A stretch of 64,000 nt of DNA from Ginglymostoma cirratum (Eukaryota), in assembly GCA_024137785.1 (NCBI GenBank), contig JAHRHZ010000107.1, positions 1 through 64,000 of the forward strand. The letters are read 5' to 3'. The position numbers and the translations under genes were made by a program. Positions 40,906-64,000 of the stretch are shown here, in pieces (positions within the stretch are counted from its first letter, which is position 1; the number at the start of each line of letters is the position of its first letter). A model generated the notes under the pieces. The model searched no databases. It was not told the origin of the DNA and saw only the letters and a list, made by a program, of their open reading frames with translations.

Positions 40906-41415
40906 GAGGTAACAAGGTGCAGAGCTGGATGAAAACAGCAGGCCAAGCAGCNNNNNNNNNNNNNNNNNNNNNNNNNNNNNNNNNNNNNNNNNNNNNNNNN
41001 NNNNNNNNNNNNNNNNNNNNNNNNNNNNNNNNNNNNNNNNNNNNNNNNNNNNNNNNNNNNNNNNNNNNNNNNNNNNNNNNNNNNNNNNNNNNNNNNNNNN
41101 NNNNNNNNNNNNNNNNNNNNNNNNNNNNNNNNNNNNNNNNNNNNNNNNNNNNNNNNNNNNNNNNNNNNNNNNNNNNNNNNNNNNNNNNNNNNNNNNNNNN
41201 NNNNNNNNNNNNNNNNNNNNNNNNNNNNNNNNNNNNNNNNNNNNNNNNNNNNNNNNNNNNNNNNNNNNNNNNNNNNNNNNNNNNNNNNNNNNNNNNNNNN
41301 NNNNNNNNNNNNNNNNNNNNNNNNNNNNNNNNNNNNNNNNNNNNNNNNNNNTGTGTTCATCCAGCTCTGCACTTTGTTATCTCAGATTCTCCAGCATCTG
41401 CAGTTCATGCTGTCT
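40906..41415. mobile_element. Penelope-type inverted-terminus insertion spanning the assembly gap, 15-bp TSD
   Basis: CTACTTACTAATTAT at 40891-40905 and 41416-41430. The arms on either side of the Ns are reverse complements of the Penelope terminus. Confidence 0.75.
40952..41351. other. Assembly gap (400 N)
   Basis: Run of N. Confidence 1.
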
Positions 41416-44074: not shown

Positions 44075-45610
44075 GATAGAATATAGAACAGAACAGCACA
44101 GTGCAGGCTCTTCAGCCCACGATGTTGTGCCGAGCTATTATCCTCCTCTAAGATCAAACTATCCTGCTTACCGTACAATTTACTATCATACAAGTGCCTA
44201 TCGAAGAGTCGCTTAAATGTCCCTAATGTATCTGACTCCACGACCACCGCTGGCAGCTCATTCCGAGTACACACTACTCTCTGTGTAAAGAACCTAAGGT
44301 TGACATCTCCCCATGCCTTCCTCCAATCATCTTGAACTTATGCTCCCTCTTAATAATCATTTCCGCTTCAGGAAAAATTCTCTGGCTATCCACTCTATCT
44401 ATGCCCCTCATCATCATGTACAACTCTATCAAGTCACCTTTCATCCTTCTTTGCTCCAATGAGAAAATTCCCAGATCCCTCAACCTTTCCACATAAGACC
44501 TGCCCTCCAGTCCAGGCAACATCCTGGTAAATCTCTTCTGCACCCTTTCTAAAGCTTCCACATCCTTCCTAAAATGAGGCAACCAGAACTGCTCTCAATA
44601 TTCCAAGTGTAGACTAACCAGGGTTTCATAGAGCTGCAGCATAACCTCACGGCTCTTCAACTCAATTCCCCTGCCAATGAAAGCCAACACACCGTATGCC
44701 ATCTTAATGATCCTGTCAATTTTGGTAGCAACTTTGAGGGATCTATGGATGCGGACCCCCAGATCCCTTTGTTCCTCCACACTGCTCAGAATCCTGCCAT
44801 TAACCCTGCATTCTGCATTCAAACTCGACCTTCCAACATGAATCACTTCACACTTTTCTGGGTTGAATTCCATCTACCACTTCTTTCCCCATCTCTACAT
44901 CCTCTCAATGTCCCGTTGCAACCTATAACAGCCCTACATGCTATCCACAACTCCACCATCCTTCGTGTCATCGGCAAACTTACTAACCCACCCTTCCACT
45001 TTCTCATCCAAGTCATTTATAAAGGTCAAAGAGCAGAGGTCCCAGAACAGATCCCTGCGGAACACCACTGGTCACTGAGCTCCAGGCTGAATACTTTCCA
45101 ACTACTACCACCCTCTGTCTTCTACTCGACAGCTAATTCTGCATCCAGTCAGCCAGATTTCTCTGAATCCCATGCCTCCTTACTTTCTAAATGACCCTCA
45201 AATGGGGAACCTTCTCAAATGCCTTGCTAAAATCCATATACACCACATTCACTACTCTGCCTTCATCAATGTGTTTTGTCACATCCTCAAAGAATTCGAT
45301 AAGACTTGTGAGGCATGATCTGCCCCTCACAAAGCCATGGTGACTATTTCTTATCAAACTGTGCATTTCCAAATAATCATAGATACTATCACTCAGAATC
45401 CTCTCCAATAATAAGCCCACCACAGAAGTAAGACTGACTGTTGTGTAATTACCAGGACCATCCCTTTTCCATTTTCTTGAAAAAGGGAATAACATTTGCC
45501 ACCCTCCAATTGTCTGGTACTACTCCAGTGTACAGCGAGGAAGCAAAGATCATCGCCAAACGCGCAGCAATCTCTTCCCTCGCTTCCAGTAGTAACATTG
45601 GGTAGATCCA
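44075..45610 (-). mobile_element. Relatively young CR1 LINE, RT plus 3' end
   Basis: Long near-consensus peptides: PGNYTTVSLTSVVG..HGFVRGRSCLTSLIEFFE..YMDFSKAF, MEFNPEKCEVIHVG, ALERVQKRFTRMLPGL; (agaac)n tail. Confidence 0.92.
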
Positions 45611-49859: not shown

Positions 49860-52300
49860 AACCATAAGACCTTAAGAAATAGGAGTAAGAATAAAGTCAT
49901 TCAGCATATTCGAGTTTACTTTGTCATTTGATCATGGCTGATATGCTTTTCAACACCATTCTGCTGCCTTCTCCCCGTAACACCTGATGCTCTTGCTAAT
50001 TTCGACCCGAACTCTCTCTTAAATGCACTCAATGACTTGTGCCACAGACTTCTGTGCTAATTCATTCCACAGGTTCACCCCATTCTTGCTGAAGAAATTC
50101 CTCCTCATCTCAATACTAAAGATTGTCCCTTCAGTTTGCGTCGAAGTCTCTTCGACAAGTGGAATTATCTTCTCCACGTCTAATCTAAACAAGTCTCTTA
50201 GTATTCTGTAAGATTCAATGAGATCCCCCCTCATCCTCAAAATTGCATTGAATCAGATTAAGGGTCCTCAACTGCTCTTCATATGATAAGCCATTCATCC
50301 ACTGGAATACTCTTTTGAACCACCTGTTGACCCCTTCCGATGCCAGCACGTCCTTCCTTCGGTACGGAACTCAAAACTGCTCACAATATTCCAAATGTGG
50401 TCCTTGTACAGCCTCAGAGGGATATCCCTGCTCTTGTATTCTCGTCCTGTTGATATTAATGCTAACATTGCATTTCCCTTCCTACTTGCCACCTGCATGT
50501 TAACCTTAAGGGAATCCAGAACTAGGAACCCCAAATTCCTTTGTGCTTCAGATTTCAGAAGTCTTTCCCCATTTAGAAATGGTCTACGTCTCTATTCTTC
50601 CAGCCAAAATTCATAACCTCACATTATATTCCATCTACCAGTTCTTTGCTATTCCCCAGTCTGTCAAAGTCCAATTGCAGCCTCCCTGCATCCACAACAT
50701 TACCTGTCCCTCCACTTATCTTTGTGTCATCTGCCAACTTGGCAAAAATGCCCTCAGATTCTTCATCTGGGTCGTTTATGAATAACGTGAATAGTTATGG
50801 TTCCAATATTTATACCTGTGGAACTCCAATTGGCACTGTTTACCATCCTGAAATAGATATCTTTATCCCCACTCTTTGCCTCTGCCAGTTCGTCAACCCT
50901 GTATATATGCAAGTACGTTGCCCCAACTACCAATCTCTTATCGTATTTAGCAGCCTCCTATTCTTATCAAAAGCTTTCTGGAAATCCAAATAGATCACGT
51001 CCACTAGTTCTCCTTTGTCTAACGTACTGATTACCACATCAAAGAATTCTAACAGATTTGTGAGGCATGACTTTGCAATGATGAAGCCGTGCTGACCCAG
51101 CCCTATTTTACCAAACACATACAAGTACTTTGCAATCTCGCCTTGAATAATTGACTCGAAAATGTTACCAAAGACTGAGGTCAAACTTATTGACCTACAA
51201 TTTTCTGTTTTCTCACTCCCTCCCTTCTTCAGCAGGTGTGTTACATTCGTCAATTTCTCGCCCTCCCAGACTACACTTCTTCCTGAAAGATCGTCACCAA
51301 TGTCCCCATGATCTCCTCAGCTTTCTGCTTCAGAACTTTGGAGTTTGGTGCATCTGGTACTGGTGATTTATCCATCGTCTGACCAATCAGCTTCGCCAGC
51401 ACCTTCTCCTCAGTGATGGATTCGACACACACGCTTGTTCTTTGACTCTCTTGAAGTTTTGGTATATTACTGGAGTATTCCACGGTGAGGGTTGATGCAA
51501 AGCACCTATTCAGTTCCTGTGAATTTTTTTCGTCCGAATTACTGCTTCTCCAGACTCGCTTCCCAGTGGTCTCTGTTACCTTCTATATATCTAAAATATC
51601 TCTTGTCATCTCCTTTTGCATTACAAGCTAGATTATTCTCACATTTCATTTTCTTCCCCTTTTTGTTAGCTTTCCACTGCTGCTTTTCGAGATTTCCTAA
51701 TCCTCTCGTTTCCCACATAATTCATTTATTGTAAGCTTTATCTTTTTCTTTTCTGCTGCGTCTGATTACCCTTGTCAGCCATGATTACCTCGTCCTCCAC
51801 AGAGTATGTTTCTTCTTCCTTGGGATGAATTTCTGCCGTACCTCCTGAATTATCGCAGAAGCTCCTGCCATTGTTTCAGCAGTATCTTCATGCTATTGTT
51901 CCCTTCCAGTACAGTCTGGACAGCTCCTCTGTCATATCTGAATACCCCTCACATCAATTGTAAAGCCAAGACATCTGATTCAAGCTTCTCCCTCTCAAAA
52001 CATCGGCTGAATGACATCCGAGTCCAGCTATTTACCTCGAGGAGTTCCTTCATTTGAGCTTCCAGTCAAGTACTCCCCAACGGATATCACCAAATCCATA
52101 ATTTCCTGTACTCTACTGGGCTGTACCACAAGCTTCACCAAAAATAACCTCCTAGACATCGCATGAATTTCTTTCCTTGGGATTTGCTACCAACATGATT
52201 TTCCCAGTCTGGCTGCATATTGAATTCCCCCAAGATTATTGTAAGTGTGCCTTTCGTACATCCTTTATGTGTTTCCTGATTTATTTTCTGCTCCAGATAT
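49860..52300 (-). mobile_element. CR1-clade LINE remnant
   Basis: QHGFIIAKSCLTNLLEFFD..YLDFQKAFD and DKSPVPDA peptides; accataagacc tail. Confidence 0.88.
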
Positions 52301-54429: not shown

Positions 54430-56572
54430 TTCCATACGAGTTAAAATACAGAAGAGAGATAGAGGGCTTGGTGAAGTGGTGCCGTGAAAATAATTTGCCC
54501 GTAACCATTGGCAAGACGAAAGAATTGATATTTGACTTCAAAAAGAAAGGAGGAGAACATGCCCCCATCTACACCAACAGAACTGAGGTTGGGAGAGTGC
54601 AGAGCATCAAGTTCCTCAGGGTGACGATAACCAACGACCTGTCCTGGACTTCCCACGTAAATGTGACAGTCAAGAAGGCAAAACAACGCCTCTTCTTCCA
54701 CAAGCGGCTCAGGAAATTTGGCAGGTCCATGAGATCCCTCACAAACTCCACAGATGCACCATTGAAAGCATACTCTTCGGGCGCATAATGGCCTGGTTTA
54801 ATAACTGCTCTGCCCAGGACAGTAAGAAACCATAGAAGGTGCTGGGAACAGCTCAGACCATCATGGAAAGCAACCTTCCATTCATGGACTCTATGTACAT
54901 GGTTCGCTGCCTCAGAAAGGTGGCCAATATCATCAAAGACCCATCACACCCTGACAATGACCTCCTACAACCTCTTCCGTCTGGCAGAAGATACAGAAGC
55001 TTGAAAACAGGCAGAAGAAGGTTCACGAACGACTCTTTTCCGGCCATTAGGAAGAAATAGAAAGGCATCTGGATACAAACTCTCCCATTGGGAACACCCA
55101 GCATGTGTTCACGAAGGGTAGGTCATGTTTAACTGATTTGGTGGAATTGTTTGAGGACATTACTTGGATGGTGGACAATGGGGAACCTGCGGATGTGGCG
55201 TATCTGGATGTCCAGAAGGCATTTGACAAGATGCCACACCAAAGTCTGCGACATAAGATAAATTTGCACAGTATTACAGGTAATTTAATGACATGTACAG
55301 AGGATTGGTTGACTCGTAGAAAGCAAAGCGTAAGGGTAAATGGATGTTTTTCTGTTTGGCGTCACTGGCTAGTGGTGTGCCTCAGAGATCAGTGTTGGGA
55401 CGAAACTCTTTACAATTTATGCAGATGATATGGAGTTGGGGACTAAGCGTGGTGTGTCAAAATTTGCAGATGACACTAAGATGAGTGGTAGAGCAAAGTG
55501 TGCAGAAAACACTGAAAGTCTACAGAGGGATATAGATAGTCGAAGTGAGTGGGAAAACGTCTGGCAGATGGAGTACAATGTTGATCAGTGTGAGGTCATC
55601 CATTCTGGGAGGAATAACAACAAATGGTCTATGCTTTAAATGGCAAATAAATGCTGCACTCTGCTGTGTCGAGCGACTTGGGTGTCCTTGTGCATGAATC
55701 GCTAAAAGTAGGATTGCAGGTTCAGCATGGAATTTAAAAGGCAAATAGAATTTGTCTGTCATTGCTAGCGGGATGGAATTCAAAAACAGGGAGGCTCTGC
55801 TGCCGTTGTGTATGATCCTGGTGAGGCCACACCTGGAGTACTGTGAGCAGGTTTGTTCTCCTTACTTGAGAAGGGATACACTAGCACTGGAGGGGGTGCA
55901 GAGGAGATTCGCTCGGTTGATTCCAGAGTTGAGAGGGTTGGATTATGAGGAGAGACTGAGTAGGCTGAGATTATACACATTGGAATTCATAAGAATGAGG
56001 GGAGATCTTCTCGAAACATAGAAGATGATGAAGGGAATAGATAAGGTGGAGGCAGGGAGGTTGTTTCCACTGGAAGGTGAAACTAGGACGATGTGGAATA
56101 GCCTCAAAATAACGGGAAGCAGATGTAGGACTGAGGTCAGGAGGAACGTCTTCCCCCAAAGGGTTGTGAATCTATGGAATTCCCTGCCCAATGAAGCGGT
56201 TGAAGCTACCTCGTTGAATGTGTTTCAGGCAATGCGAGATAAATTTTTGATCAGTAAAAGAATTAAGGGTTATTGTGTGAGGGCGGGTCAGTGGAGCTGA
56301 GTCTCAAAATGATCAGCCATGATCTGATTGAATGGTGGAGCAGTCTCGAAGGGCCATATGGCCTACTCCTGCTCCGAATTCTTACGTTCCTACGTTCTTA
56401 TATCATTAGACTGTTGAATGCACTCTGGAGGAAATAATGTAACCTGTATGTTTCGAAATCATTTCGATCTGTACATCCTTTGCTTGCTGTGATCTACGTG
56501 CACTGCTCGTACACAAAGATTTTCAATGTATTTCCGTACACAGTGAAAACAAAATCAGTCAATCAATCAACA
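54430..56572 (+). mobile_element. Rex1/Babar-clade LINE 3' part, split by a CR1 insertion
   Basis: KTKELIFDFKK..IKFLRVTITNDLSWTSHV..KKAKQRLFF..LRKFG..IIKDPSHP..LPSGRRYR (Rex1/Babar C-terminus). Resumes at 56404 and ends in (caat)n. Confidence 0.75.
55051..56403 (+). mobile_element. CR1 LINE RT plus 3' end, nested in Rex1 (TSD CATTAG)
   Basis: SCLTDL..YLDVQKAFDK, SKFADDTK, VRPHLEYC peptides; CATTAG at 55045-55050 and 56404-56409. Confidence 0.9.
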
Positions 56573-58690: not shown

Positions 58691-59914
58691 GAAGACTACA
58701 GCTGATTACATAATGATAATATGACAAGTTACGTTCCCAAAATTTTCCCCAATCTAAAAATATTTTGCCAACCAATTTCATCTCTCAGTTCTGGACACAG
58801 AATTGTGTTCTTGTTCATTGAACTGGAAACAAGCTGATCAAATGATTCTCGTACACAATTCAGTAAATCATCACCAAGAACAGAACATGCAATGATACTC
58901 GAAATTTTGCATTAAAAGACAAATAGATTAACCTTGAAATGCTCAACAGCCTTCGCAGCATCTCAGTAGACCAAAAGTAAGTTAAAATGTCATGTCATGA
59001 GCATTAATCGGAGCACTTCTGAGGAAATATCACAGCATGAAACTTTCCCACTGTGAAATGTTTCCAAAGCTTCACGACCCTGTCTACAAAGGTTTGTCTT
59101 CTGCCCCTCTGCTAAAGATTTTACATTTACACGTGTATAAACTGTTTCTGTTTCCATCTTCTTCAACTTCTCTTTGCAAAGAGGTCCCACCTATTCAGAA
59201 TTTCAAACAAGTCTGTTATGTGAGCCAATAATGACAGTTTTTCGAATAGAGAACAGCTCAAATTTAATATGCTCATCAAATCGCGATTTGTACAGAGAAG
59301 TCGACATTCTCGTGAATCTCTGGTGCAAGCTCTGAAATCACAATCTTCAAACTCTTGGCTGGAATCGAATACTGAACTCTTGAAATATGTTTTTGGTCTT
59401 CAGGACCTCTTGTGATTTGTAATTTGTACTGACTTTTATTGATTTAACAACAAGAAGAAGAACTGGAGTTTCTTTTGATTGCTTTTAGAGTTGTATCAAG
59501 CTTGAAAGCTATCGTCAAAAAAACCTTTCATATCAAAGCACCAAACCTCTGCCAATTGAAAGCATTGCCATTGCTTTTTGTTTAAAAACTGCAAAATTTC
59601 AACAAATAATATTGACTTCCATATGCTAATTGCTCCAATTTATCAGCTTTTAGGTGTGTCCGTGTCCATGAGTTCACTGTCTTAACATGATAAATGTTCC
59701 CAGAAATGAAATTAAAATATCACCAAGTTAAAACACAAGTAAATTAAACACATACAATGAAGCCTGATTGGAAGAAATGCGGCATAGTTATATGGAAGTG
59801 GTTTCTCCATTATACCAATTATCTGTTCATTCTAAATCGATGCGAATCCCCATAACGTGACTAAGTTGAGAGGACACAAAACTCAGCCCATCACAACCCT
59901 GAGCTATAATGAAC

Positions 59915-59972
59915 GTGATTGGTTTCTTGCTGCGTGCCATGCAAATAAACCCAGTCTCACAAGGTTTATAAT
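59915..59972 (+). promoter_or_regulatory. IgNAR V promoter: inverted CCAAT (GATTGG 59917-59922), octamer ATGCAAAT (59939-59946), TATA (TATAA 59967-59971)
   Basis: Perfect IgH-orientation octamer 20 bp upstream of TATA, 121 bp upstream of the leader ATG. Confidence 0.75.
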
Positions 59973-60059
59973 GTCAGTGCTCTGATACACACAGTTACAC
60001 AGAGCAAGCTGTGTTGAAATCTGGATTTTGCTGTTCATAATTCTATCGGTGCAGAAACA

Positions 60060-60102
60060 ATGAATATTTTCTTGCTTTCAGTCCTTTTAGCCTCATTACC
60101 AT
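60060..60102 (+). CDS. IgNAR: IgNAR leader exon (MNIFLLSVLLASLP, phase-1 split codon)
   Basis: ATG at 60060, hydrophobic signal peptide matching the known IgNAR leader (MNIFLLSVLLA..), donor GTAAGT at 60103. A 134-bp intron runs to the acceptor tttctctgtccAG at 60236. Confidence 0.95.
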
Positions 60103-60236
60103 GTAAGTGGTGTTTCATGTAGATATTTATTTGTTTAAACTGTGCATCTGTTTTTACGTTATTGTAATGTCCCTTTCTGAAAACTCTTCTATTGACAGAT
60201 AAATGTCATGTATTAAATGTGCATTTCTCTGTCCAG

Positions 60237-60504
60237 ATGTCTTTACTGCTCGAGTGGACCAAACACCGAAAACAATAACAAAGGAGACGGGCGAATCACT
60301 GACCATCAACTGTGTCCTACGAGATACTAGCTATGCATTGGGCAGCACGTACTGGTATCGAAAAAAATTGGGCTCAACAAACGAGGAGAGCATATCGAAA
60401 GGTGGACGATATGTTGAAACAGTTAACAGCGGATCAAAGTCCTTTTCTTTGAGAATTAATGGTCTAAAAGTTGAAGACAGTTGGACGTATCGATGCAAGG
60501 CATA
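60237..60504 (+). CDS. IgNAR: IgNAR variable (VNAR) germline V exon, type IV-like (no non-canonical Cys)
   Basis: (Y)[89 protein letters not shown]22, W36 and C83 present, with the VNAR-type CDR2 deletion. Ends at the RSS heptamer. Confidence 0.97.
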
Positions 60505-60542
60505 CACAGTAATGAGCTTGATCTTTCATCATTGCAGAATGC
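60505..60542 (+). other. V 3' RSS (22-bp spacer)
   Basis: CACAGTA - 22 bp - GCAGAATGC (nonamer 5/9 to ACAAAAACC). Confidence 0.8.
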
Positions 60543-60740
60543 CATCAAATCTCCTACTAAGTAATTCGGGCTTATTTTTTCTTTCAACGCTGAACACTGA
60601 CTTTGATTAAATCAGTTCGGATCTGTAATAGCAGGAGGCAGGTTATAAATGATTGATGCCAACATTCAGCGGAAAGATCTGGACAAGAGGTAATTGGATG
60701 TTCAGCGCTGCTATTCAATTTACCGTTATGTACGACCATT

Positions 60741-60821
60741 TATTTTTGCATTGGGATGTAACACTGTGATAACTGGGATTGACACAGCAATCGAAAATAT
60801 GACTCTGGTAATACAGAAACG
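60741..60821 (+). other. IgNAR: IgNAR D1 (60769-60782, ATAACTGGGATTGA) with 12-RSS and 23-RSS
   Basis: TATTTTTGC-12-CACTGTG | D | CACAGCA-23-ACAGAAACG. Confidence 0.92.
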
Positions 60822-61010
60822 ACCAGCATACATTGTCACCAGAATCAGAAATACCTTGATTTATGGGTTATCGGGATGGGCAGCTATTCTGTAGCTTGGA
60901 GGGCTATCAATGTTAGTTTTCTGAAAGAGCCACAAAAAGATGTACAATGGTAGGAATCTGAATTGTGGTTTGCCCCTCGACTGCAGGCTGTTGTATGAAT
61001 GAATGCGGGA

Positions 61011-61089
61011 CGTTTTTGTACTGATCTGTGTGACTGTGTTACTGTGAATACCACAACAACGAAACTTTCAGTCCCGTAATACTGAAACC
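61011..61089 (+). other. IgNAR: IgNAR D2 (61039-61051, TTACTGTGAATAC) with 12-RSS and 22-RSS
   Basis: CGTTTTTGT-12-GACTGTG | D | CACAACA-22-ACTGAAACC. One frame encodes YCEY. Confidence 0.9.
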
Positions 61090-61410
61090 TCCCAACACCT
61101 TAGAGTCCATTATTAATGCAAATTATTATTTCCATGCCAAAAACACATCATGCTTAAATGCTCCTTGCAACTGTTAAAGTCTGGCTGCTGCTGTCGAACG
61201 ATAATCATACTCCTTCAGTTGATTATTATGTGAATGCCAAAATCATATTCACATTGCAATGTTGACAATTATCATTTGCTGAGTGACCAAAAAGTATAAA
61301 CGTTGACTGGGAACACAATATAAAGGGAATGATTTGCATCATACATTCTGCATCAGTCAATCAATATCCTGGAACATCTGGATGATTTTTGGCGATATTT
61401 GCACCAATGG

Positions 61411-61478
61411 ATTTCTTGTGCTGGAGTGAAATAGTGTGATATGCTGTCGACACAGTGACACACGCCGCAGCATAAACC
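61411..61478 (+). other. IgNAR: IgNAR D3 (61439-61450, ATATGCTGTCGA) with 12-RSS on both sides
   Basis: ATTTCTTGT-12-TAGTGTG | D | CACAGTG-12-GCATAAACC. Frames read ICCR / YAV / MLS. Confidence 0.9.
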
Positions 61479-61790
61479 TTTCCCACGGTTGTCTGTTTTA
61501 CTTCTTGAAAGTAATTTCAATCATGAACTTTCTTGCTGATGGTTGCTGCTTCATCAAATTTAACATCAATTCTAGTTTGCCATTTTCTGGAATTCTCGAC
61601 ACATCCTCGGATGTAAACTCAGCATGCTGTCTTTTCCACTGTTACTCACACTCGCATTGGAAATAGGAAAAATGTGAATGAATTTATAACTGTCCATAAA
61701 TGAGGATTAGTTAATGCTATGAATGTGTAATGGAGACACTAGAGAAGACGTGTCTTTAAATGTTGATAGAATGACGGTTGCTTCACTGAC

Positions 61791-61829
61791 CCTTTTTGGG
61801 CAGCACTGATTGAGATCTGATTGACTGTG
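61791..61829 (+). other. J 5' RSS (23-bp spacer)
   Basis: CCTTTTTGG-23-GACTGTG. Confidence 0.88.
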
Positions 61830-61874
61830 ACAGCTATGAATACGGAGGTGGCACTGTCGTGACTGTAAATCCTG
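61830..61874 (+). CDS. IgNAR: IgNAR J segment (SYEYGGGTVVTVNP)
   Basis: YGGGTVVTVN FR4 motif characteristic of IgNAR; phase-1 donor G|GTAAGT at 61875. Confidence 0.96.
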
Positions 61875-62869
61875 GTAAGTGACCTCCCTCGCTACAAATC
61901 GTTATGGTTTTGCTGACAAATTAAAAAAGTCATAGTTCTCATTAAAACAGTTTGAAATGCATACCAGTGATAACTGGAAGAATTTTTTTCATGGGCTCGC
62001 TTAGGTATGTTGCCAATTTATGTGCCTTAAATTTCAAGCTTATTTTCAGATTTCGTTGGAGCATGAGTATATTGCTAAATATATCATTCGGCTGGGAACA
62101 AGCCAATATTTAAACATATAATCGACTTGGCGTGAAGAATGGAAGATGCTTATTGAAATAGATCATGGAGTTCAGCTGCTACAAAGGAAACCGACAACGA
62201 AGTTATCGTGTATTTTGGCGTGCTAGTGTTTCACAGATACACAGGGCTTTTCATTCGAACAGTTTAGGCAAGTCTGAATTTAGAAAAGCTTTACGCAAGC
62301 AGTAAAGCTTTTTTGAATTGGGGTCTGAATGAAATGCAGAGGAGATGACTCATGCAATTAAAAATTGACAAGAGCTTCGGCTGTAATATCGTTGATTTGA
62401 TGGCAAATTCCCTGAAAATGATTATAACTGTTTGAATGAGGTGGGACCGACTGTGTTTACACAATGTAATTTTAATTAATTTCCCGGGTGTCTTCAAGAG
62501 CCATGAAAATCTCATTTTATTTTTCTGCAATGTCGTGTTTTGTAGTTACAAATGCAACCTTTTTTATCTTTTTTACAAACCTGCTTAAATTGATTTTGAC
62601 TTAAACATTGATACGATTATGCTTACCAATACAGAGATGACTTTTTCAACTTGGGAAACTTTCTTGTAGACGAATATCGCAATCTTCTGCAATTGGCTGC
62701 AAAGGGCTACAATTACTGCAAAGCAAAATTGCTGAAACATGACCCAATATCAAATATGAGCTACTGCTTTCGACTTTGCCATGAAGAAAATATACAGTGA
62801 ATTTTATTGAAGATTAGATCAGTCCAGCAAGTGGTAAATGTAACTAACCCTGAGGAATAGTCTTCCATA

Positions 62870-63235
62870 TAATACATGGAAACATAGAAGTCGGAATAGC
62901 AGAAGAGCGTTTTGTTCTTCGGGCCTGCTCCACAGTTCAATATGATCATTACTGATAATTCAACTGTATAACCTGTACCCGTTTTGTCCCAGACTGCTTG
63001 ATCAATTTAGCCCGAAGAGCTATATCTGAATTCTTATCTCAAACATTCAACGTTTCAGCCTCAGCCACATTTTCTGGGAGCGAATATGGTCCGGACAGTA
63101 CTTATACACTTAATGGTAAGGCCCTGGGTCATGTTGGAGAACAGAGTGACCGAAGGGGTCAGGTCTATAATTCTTTGAAATTTCCATCACTGGTGGACAG
63201 GATGGTTAAGTAGGCGATTAGCATGCTTGCCTTCA
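62870..63235. mobile_element. CR1 fragments in the J-C intron (3' tail on -, RT-distal piece on +)
   Basis: acatggaaacatagaag.. tail, then YTLNGKALGHVGEQSDRRGQVYNSLK..VDRMVK. Confidence 0.7.
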
Positions 63236-63552
63236 AGTTCACAACCCCCGTCAGTACTTAAAAGCCTTATAATTTTAATGAGTCCTCATCCAATATTTAT
63301 CGCTGTAATGTTTCACTTATTCTCTGAATATTCCATTCTTTAATGGCAATTTCATTTTATTCTCCAAAAGAGAGAATGCTGTTTGTGTCATAAGTCTTGC
63401 ATGTCTAAGATATATCTCTTTCGTTGATTTAAAAAAGAAGAAAAACACCCATGAGATATAGAAGTCGCTGACTGGGTCAACATTTATTTTCACTTTAGCA
63501 AATTTGGGGCACAACACACTCTGCCACATAAAACATCGAACAAATTTGGTTG

Positions 63553-63642
63553 AGATGACAAGGTGTCGAGCTGGATGAACACAGCAGGTCAAGCAGCATC
63601 AGAGGAGCAGGAAGGCTGACGTTTCGTGCCTAGACACTTCAT
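63553..63642 (-). mobile_element. ~90-bp Penelope pLTR fragment with a hammerhead-like core, flanked by a 12-bp direct repeat
   Basis: CAAATTTGGTTG at 63541-63552 and 63643-63654. Minus strand reads TGATGA-AGTGTCTAGGCAC-GAAAC-GTC, then the Penelope terminus. Confidence 0.75.
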
Positions 63643-64000
63643 CAAATTTGGTTGCACAGTTCAGAATAACTCCGATGTTTTATTGCAGTTATTGGTAAAT
63701 TAGACCAAGTTTTTTTTTTCCAAACTGGCATATGATTTAATGAAATAAGTTGCAACCTCCTAGTCCTCCATGGGGATAATTTACTCTGTGTTTCCTTAGA
63801 TGTCTTTCATTTTACTGGGAAATGATACACTGCAACTGATTTTTAGTAGATTTATATTTTGTTATGGCCCTGACTGTGCAACATCCAATTATGAATGCAA
63901 CATTTAACTAACAGTTCAGGCAGGAGGGCTGCAGAACCATTACTCATAAGATAATATACTCATTCAAGGGACTTCTCTGGTGACCCTTCTCTGAACAGCC

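Follow-up and report, generated by a model that had tools for sequence, protein, structure and literature searches.

The immunoglobulin new antigen receptor (IgNAR) genes of sharks occur in tandem arrays in which only some clusters are complete or expressed, as described for the white-spotted bamboo shark (three incomplete clusters among seven; PMC8692893) and for the nurse shark (PMC11641339). The nurse-shark survey placed three IgNAR loci on one scaffold and found expression of types I and II only, with GcIgNAR3 below detection, and its authors anticipate that further IgNAR loci are to be identified in this species (PMC11641339). The variable domains of these receptors (VNARs) are small, stable binders, and both library primers and type classification depend on the known germline loci. 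Here we describe an IgNAR cluster in a window of 64,000 nucleotides of nurse-shark (Ginglymostoma cirratum) DNA, positions 1 to 64,000 of contig JAHRHZ010000107.1. The stretch from 59.9 to 62 kb of this window is a germline, unjoined IgNAR minicluster of nurse shark with a single variable (V) segment, three diversity (D) segments and a single joining (J) segment (V-D-D-D-J), here called the Cys-free cluster, its V and J segments having no non-canonical Cys. It is a diverged paralog that adds next to nothing to the expressed repertoire, and we consider it probable that it represents a silent or decaying extra cluster of the nurse-shark tandem IgNAR array. It may be either the unexpressed third locus, GcIgNAR3, with which it was compared by description only, or an unannotated cluster, possibly one without a constant (C) region of its own. 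In contrast to the incomplete bamboo-shark clusters, its V-D-D-D-J part is intact and not truncated.

The Cys-free cluster has the arrangement of leader, V, three D and J in common with the type II cluster (GcIgNAR2, PMC11641339; Protein Data Bank (PDB) 2I26, 7S83_B), and with it framework region (FR) 1 TPxTITKE, Tyr35, GSTNEES, EDSxTYRCK and FR4 YGGGTVVTVN; the proteins are 86-87% identical and the flanks at least 95%. Whereas type II has Cys29 (TGT) and NCALSST, the Cys-free cluster has TAT and SYALGST. It further carries the private residues K8, L41, G72, K74, W79, leader S12 and a Glu in J where type II has Val, and its use was undetected in the repertoire. With the type I cluster (GcIgNAR1; PDB 1SQ2, 6X4G_N) it shares the motif SYALGST of complementarity-determining region (CDR) 1 as well as D segments capable of encoding Cys. 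Type I, however, has one Cys in FR2 (TGC), a feature reported in nurse shark only (PMC6312525), and one in FR4, where the Cys-free cluster has Tyr35 (TAC) and Tyr, respectively, and the RSV of type I FR1 and EDGG of its FR3 are replaced by KTI and EDSW. Nurse-shark type III is likewise a minor locus beside the two main ones and is hardly seen in adults, but it has a germline-joined D1-D2 and both a Cys and a Trp in CDR1 (PMC4622739), whereas in the Cys-free cluster the D segments are separate and CDR1, TSYALGST, contains neither. In dogfish, wobbegong and bamboo shark, VNARs of type IV (type IIb; for example PDB 4HGK and 9UP9) likewise have only the two canonical Cys in V and a Cys-free FR4. 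Those are expressed proteins, whereas no expressed product of the Cys-free cluster was found in the two runs of raw reads described below, and Cys can enter CDR3 from its D2 and D3. In nurse shark, type IV amounts to 1.6% of a naive library and was called under-represented (PMC6312525; table in PMC12865624).

Beside these loci, the Cys-free cluster represents a fourth kind of germline V-D-D-D-J sequence, in which a type II framework is combined with a type I-like CDR1. If silent, it would be mainly of value for annotation and would not be a source of repertoire, and nurse-shark type IV reads would not be attributable to it. It further illustrates the divergence and decay of IgNAR clusters within a tandem array.

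The layout of the cluster was obtained from direct reading of positions 59400-62400 and from two scripts. Promoter, leader, V, three Ds, J and eight recombination signal sequences (RSSs), which the initial annotation had proposed as an unjoined cluster, were each recovered in place. The elements other than the RSSs are as follows.

59939-59946, + strand: immunoglobulin octamer ATGCAAAT of the V promoter, by direct reading, 20 bp 5' of TATAA
59967-59971, + strand: TATA-like box TATAA, by direct reading, about 30 bp 5' of the start of transcript coverage
60060-60102, + strand: leader exon, MNIFLLSVLLASLP followed by base 1 of a split codon; ATG at 60060, GTAAGT donor
60103-60236, + strand: leader intron, GT...AG, 134 bp; the acceptor ...TGTCCAG ends at 60236
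60237-60504, + strand: V exon, comprising the last part of the leader and a VNAR V domain of 85 residues; open frame in translation
60769-60782, + strand: D1, ATAACTGGGATTGA; frames ITGI, (stop)LGL and NWD(stop), with Cys in none
61039-61051, + strand: D2, TTACTGTGAATAC; frames LL(stop)I (frame 1), YCEY (frame 2) and TVN
61439-61450, + strand: D3, ATATGCTGTCGA; frames ICCR (frame 1), YAV and MLS
61830-61874, + strand: J, SYEYGGGTVVTVNP followed by base 1 of a split codon; GTAAGT donor at 61875

RNA-seq coverage by reads of paralogous IgNAR loci that align to the cluster begins in the bin 59998-60071, falls to zero depth in the leader-intron bin 60146-60219 and, at the position of the J donor, 96 reads continue into C1 (loose end GIPLSPPIVS). 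By tblastn, the leader shows 93% identity with that of nurse-shark NAR in P0014, and J encodes the FR4 motif GxGT-x-VTVN followed by the splice donor. A distance of 256 bp separates D1 from D2, both of which have RSSs of their own, and for D1, AACTGGGATTG is present within the CDR3 letters of rearranged paralog reads.

Expression of the Cys-free cluster and its paralogs

Positions 59850-62050 were compared with four sequencing runs. Two consist of raw nurse-shark reads, namely polyA RNA-seq (X23) and VNAR amplicons that carry a cloning tail ahead of FR1 (X24). A third (X2) comprises contigs of an amplicon-like nurse-shark run, the depths of which are rough and serve as supporting evidence only. 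The fourth (X1) consists of VNAR contigs of about 51 nt on 60248-60467 that lie between constant flanks (…GGGTGAGGAAAATGCAG / GATAGGGTGGTGAAGTGGATG); it resembles a library of tiled synthetic oligos and not shark DNA, and was excluded. Of the words sampled from the V exon, no public run contains the full set, the highest share being 0.81.

Read coverage is concentrated on leader, V and J and includes hundreds of V-to-J joints with CDR3 letters, which means that the runs do contain rearranged IgNAR. At the positions where the Cys-free cluster has letters of its own, the reads carry the letter of the paralogs nearly throughout:

60269, K8 to Q: paralog letter in 96-100% of X23 reads and in 74% of X24 reads
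60369, L41 to S: paralog letter in 98% of reads
60462, G72 to D: paralog letter in 97-99% of X24 reads and in 37 of 38 X23 reads
60468, K74 to T: paralog letter in 95-98% of reads
60482 and 60484, W79 to G: paralog letter in 94-97% of X24 reads and in 25 of 26 X23 reads
61839 and 61867, in J: paralog letter in 88-99.9% of reads

The lower value for K8 in X24 is probably due to type I reads that are clipped over FR1. Type I, recognized by Cys35 (60351 A>G), accounts for about 65% of the amplicon reads, and type II is visible among them as the clipped CDR1 SNCELSNTYW. In X23 and X24, no rearranged read could be attributed to the Cys-free cluster. The initial annotation had proposed that the cluster is a germline source dedicated to type IV VNARs and had named a lack of rearranged transcripts from this V as counting against that proposal. 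With the marker letters about 94-100% those of paralogs (K8 in X24: 74%) and no assignable rearranged read as far as X23 and X24 reach, the proposal is not supported. At 61839, the window's A is found in 3 of 44 J reads of X23, and the shares at 61839 and 61867 exceed the share of V reads with letters of the locus.

Reads that do match the cluster point to its unrearranged form. In X23, 9 of the 210 aligned reads are at least 99% like the window, and about three of the nine lie on the 3' flank of V (60516-60663) with the window letters at 60649 and 60658, so that they stem from an unrearranged template, which could be a germline transcript or carried-over DNA. One further observation in X23 is a read that bears all four FR3 letters of the Cys-free cluster. 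X2 contains a 124-nt contig identical to the V-D1 spacer of the cluster at a depth of 143, together with contigs nearest to its FR3 (60442-60501, one difference) at depths of 50-85; for the paralogs, the V contigs total 1-2.5 million and the spacer contigs about 18,000-166,000. Rough as they are, these depths mean that the unrearranged flank of the Cys-free cluster is at least as abundant as its V, the reverse of what is seen for the expressed loci. Finally, two peptides private to its V (26 and 10 letters) had no match in the searchable full texts on VNARs.

Several causes of such silence can be envisaged. It may stem from the absence of a C region or enhancer, from a closed locus, or from a V domain damaged by G79W and D72G, in which case B cells bearing it would go unselected. 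As to a C region, neither an Ig-domain nor a C exon was found by pattern and tblastn in 61876-64000, i.e., in the 2.1 kb between J and the end of the window.

Recombination signals and joining order

All eight RSSs were located, and the heptamer core CAC is kept in each of them:

60505-60543, + strand: V 3' RSS; heptamer CACAGTA, spacer 23, weak nonamer CAGAATGCC (4/9; 5/9 at spacer 22)
60741-60768, - strand: D1 5' RSS; heptamer CACAGTG, spacer 12, nonamer GCAAAAATA
60783-60821, + strand: D1 3' RSS; heptamer CACAGCA, spacer 23, nonamer ACAGAAACG
61011-61038, - strand: D2 5' RSS; heptamer CACAGTC, spacer 12, nonamer ACAAAAACG
61052-61089, + strand: D2 3' RSS; heptamer CACAACA, spacer 22, nonamer ACTGAAACC
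61411-61438, - strand: D3 5' RSS; heptamer CACACTA, spacer 12, nonamer ACAAGAAAT
61451-61478, + strand: D3 3' RSS; heptamer CACAGTG, spacer 12, nonamer GCATAAACC
61791-61829, - strand: J 5' RSS; heptamer CACAGTC, spacer 23, nonamer CCAAAAAGG

Six of the eight, within about 1.1 kb, pass a scan with strict cut-offs (5/7 or more in the heptamer and 6/9 or more in the nonamer), compared with 0.27 hits/kb in the rest of the window and a chance expectation of about 0.4 strict hits in 1.5 kb. Across the 64 kb, facing RSS pairs that flank a short segment occur at D1 and D3 only, and D2 qualifies when a 22-bp spacer is allowed. The clustering of RSSs at V-D-D-D-J far exceeds chance. While the count of eight in the initial annotation is upheld, its details had to be revised, as the nonamer of V is weak, the D2 3' signal is CACAACA with a 22-bp spacer, D3 is flanked by 12/12 signals and J has a 23-RSS. 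The Tyr that had been placed at the end of V is likewise absent, since V ends in TA and continues directly into the heptamer.

The resulting chain of spacers (V-23, 12-D1-23, 12-D2-22, 12-D3-12, 23-J) satisfies the 12/23 rule at all four joins. The IgNAR clusters of bamboo shark, too, are depicted with RSS spacers of 22 bp (PMC8692893, Fig. 1B legend). D3 would be obligatory, because its 3' 12-RSS alone can pair with the 23-RSS of J. Rearrangement would then proceed by four spacer-ordered joins made by RAG, namely V-23 to 12-D1, D1-23 to 12-D2, D2-22 to 12-D3 and D3-12 to 23-J, after which the octamer/TATA promoter would drive transcription of the joined V exon and the J donor would be spliced to a C1 exon. 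On the V 3' flank, paralog reads are at least 95% alike and have no listed differences in the V RSS, and over the heptamers and nonamers of D1, D2 5' and J the listed differences fall only in spacers or just outside. Since no differences are listed in the heptamers and nonamers that paralog reads cover, the RSSs of the Cys-free cluster look as good as those of working loci.

Divergence of the V domain and competing readings

Searched alone, unspliced to the leader, the V exon aligns end to end with VNARs of the PDB (best E = 7.6e-45, phmmer), as befits a short V of the VNAR type that lacks the C'-C'' strands, and matches Pfam V-set with 44 bits. At the protein level V is 86-87% identical to nurse-shark VNARs and 73% to bamboo shark. 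Its sequence is a mosaic, in which FR1 TPxTITKE, Tyr35, GSTNEES and EDSxTYRCK are type II-like and the CDR1 TSYALGST is type I-like, the latter comparing with (A/P)SYALGST in P0001 and P0019; the FR4 YGGGTVVTVN is type II-like and the same as in P0002-P0004. These affinities of CDR1 and J had been recognized in the initial annotation, as had the restriction of Cys in the translated V exon to positions 22 and 83, the Tyr that precedes GGGT in J, and the D2 and D3 peptides YCEY and ICCR, each of which is encoded in one frame.

For comparison by column we used VNARs of nurse shark, wobbegong, bamboo shark and dogfish, 16 in total. Four residues of the Cys-free cluster are absent from all 16, i.e., K8 (R, Q or T in the others), G72, K74 (T or R in the others) and W79. 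Position 72 is an invariant Asp in 16 of 16 VNARs versus Gly in the Cys-free cluster, and position 79, at which the cluster has Trp, is G in 14 and A in two of them. Position 79 is the small residue of the V-domain motif D-x-G/A-x-Y-x-C (Kabat H88/L84), which faces the lower core. Because of this location in the established V-domain structure, a Trp at position 79 would be expected to damage the V fold. In the leader, at 60094, the cluster has Ser (TCA) versus Leu (TTA) in all paralog reads (C>T), within the hydrophobic part of the signal peptide. Altogether, the private changes, counted against the reads irrespective of their direction, comprise seven replacements (leader S12, K8, L41, G72, K74, W79 and the J Glu) and two silent changes, and this 7:2 ratio is about that expected under neutrality, the sample being small.

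Several observations weigh against a silent or decaying cluster. The frame is open, the two splice sites and the promoter motifs are intact, and so are the CAC cores of all eight RSSs; nothing in these elements would prove that the gene is dead. The comparison VNARs, be they functional, mutated or engineered, each break 0-4 otherwise invariant columns, among which G72 alone would be unexceptional, so that sequence by itself is no proof of a dead gene. C exons may still follow, as the window stops 2.1 kb past J. In X23, the window's silent A at 61867 is present in 7 of 103 J reads, and these reads may come from the J of the Cys-free cluster, from another paralog or from read-through transcripts. 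In addition, the raw reads represent one RNA-seq and one amplicon run, and neonatal or tissue-restricted use of the kind known for type III would escape them.

Such restricted use, be it in early development or in a special tissue like type III, or else a role as gene-conversion donor among IgNAR clusters, is in our view unlikely, though worth keeping in mind. Type III is expressed mainly in young sharks (PMC4622739; PMC8692893), the low-level reads from the unrearranged locus would suit a restricted expression, and the mosaic of type II-like framework and type I-like CDR1 is what exchange between clusters would produce. Against this reading, the runs compared yielded no rearranged product, and W79 and G72, located at conserved FR3 positions, speak against a protein under selection.

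The type-defining positions suggest a second possibility. They are all Tyr, with TAT at 60332-60334 (Tyr29), TAC at 60350-60352 (Tyr35) and TAC at 61841-61843 (FR4, in J), and each of these codons is one A-to-G transition away from Cys. The paralog reads carry the corresponding Cys changes: 60351 A>G, giving TGC at position 35, in type I, and TGT at position 29 in the CDR1 loose end of type II. The Cys-free cluster could accordingly be a recombination-competent cluster retained by the nurse shark, ancestor-like or an intermediate linking types I and II, perhaps giving rise to low-level or stage-restricted disulfide-free (type IV-like) VNARs, which we regard as distinctly unlikely. Were it expressed somewhere, VNARs without extra disulfides would have an origin in the germline, and the cluster would shed light on how types I and II arose. 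As for the Tyr codons themselves, both an ancestor-like copy and a derivative by loss of Cys are possible. A bamboo-shark germline V model, P0015 (Chiloscyllium punctatum, chiPu_0020361), has a CDR1, ASYALRGTSWY, that is also Cys-free and type I-like, and may thus represent an IgNAR lineage without these Cys that is of older date.

That the cluster works as a germline source dedicated to type IV VNARs, as first proposed, we hold to be improbable. The open reading frame, promoter and splice sites and the 12/23-compatible RSS chain are intact, V and J are without non-canonical Cys, and type IV VNARs do occur in nurse-shark libraries (1.6%; PMC6312525). Against this stand the predominance of paralog letters in FR2, FR3 and J (about 94-100%; K8 in X24, 74%), with the few matching reads on the unrearranged flank, and the private V peptides, which found no counterpart in the searchable published VNAR text. 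The D segments argue in the same direction. As D2 has one frame with a stop and one with Cys, and one of the three D3 frames carries two Cys, only about one third of the productive combinations of D frames would be Cys-free (a naive count in which trimming is ignored); the remaining two thirds or so, with a D-encoded Cys in CDR3, would fall outside type IV as usually defined. Moreover, type IV reads can derive from type II through loss of Cys.

It is very unlikely that the cluster is an artefact of assembly, i.e., a chimera of type I and type II formed by the collapse of near-identical paralogs. The V resembles a type I CDR1 set into type II frameworks and the flanks of the clusters are at least 95% alike, yet K8, L41, G72, K74 and W79 are found in neither paralog, and the markers recur in independent data (the X23 read with four FR3 letters, the X2 contigs on 60442-60501 and the 124-nt spacer contig with zero differences). 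That the V belongs to a NAR-TcR cassette, an extra V of the T-cell receptor (TCR) delta chain the V domains of which are related to IgNAR V, can practically be dismissed, as there are three D segments and not one, leader and V are 86-93% identical to IgNAR, a splice donor comes after the FR4 YGGGTVVTVN at the very point from which paralog transcripts are spliced to IgNAR C1, and a leaderless TCR V is absent from the 2.1 kb after J.

Surroundings in the window

The cluster's V is the only Ig-type exon in the 64-kb window by either the Cys-Trp-YxC pattern or tblastn with 19 VNARs. The 59 kb upstream of the cluster are rich in long interspersed nuclear elements (LINEs), with many open frames like those of LINEs or reverse transcriptases (RTs) on both strands, and include one gap:

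40952-41351: gap of 400 N
44277-44873, - strand: LINE/RT-like open frame
50930-51316, - strand: LINE/RT-like open frame
55051-56297, + strand: LINE/RT-like open frame

On the other side of the cluster, at 62959-63210 (+ strand), there is an open frame (…YTLNGKALGHVGEQSDRRGQVYNSLK…) similar to the C-terminal portion of a LINE reverse transcriptase, which lies 1.1 kb 3' of J, in the would-be J-C intron.

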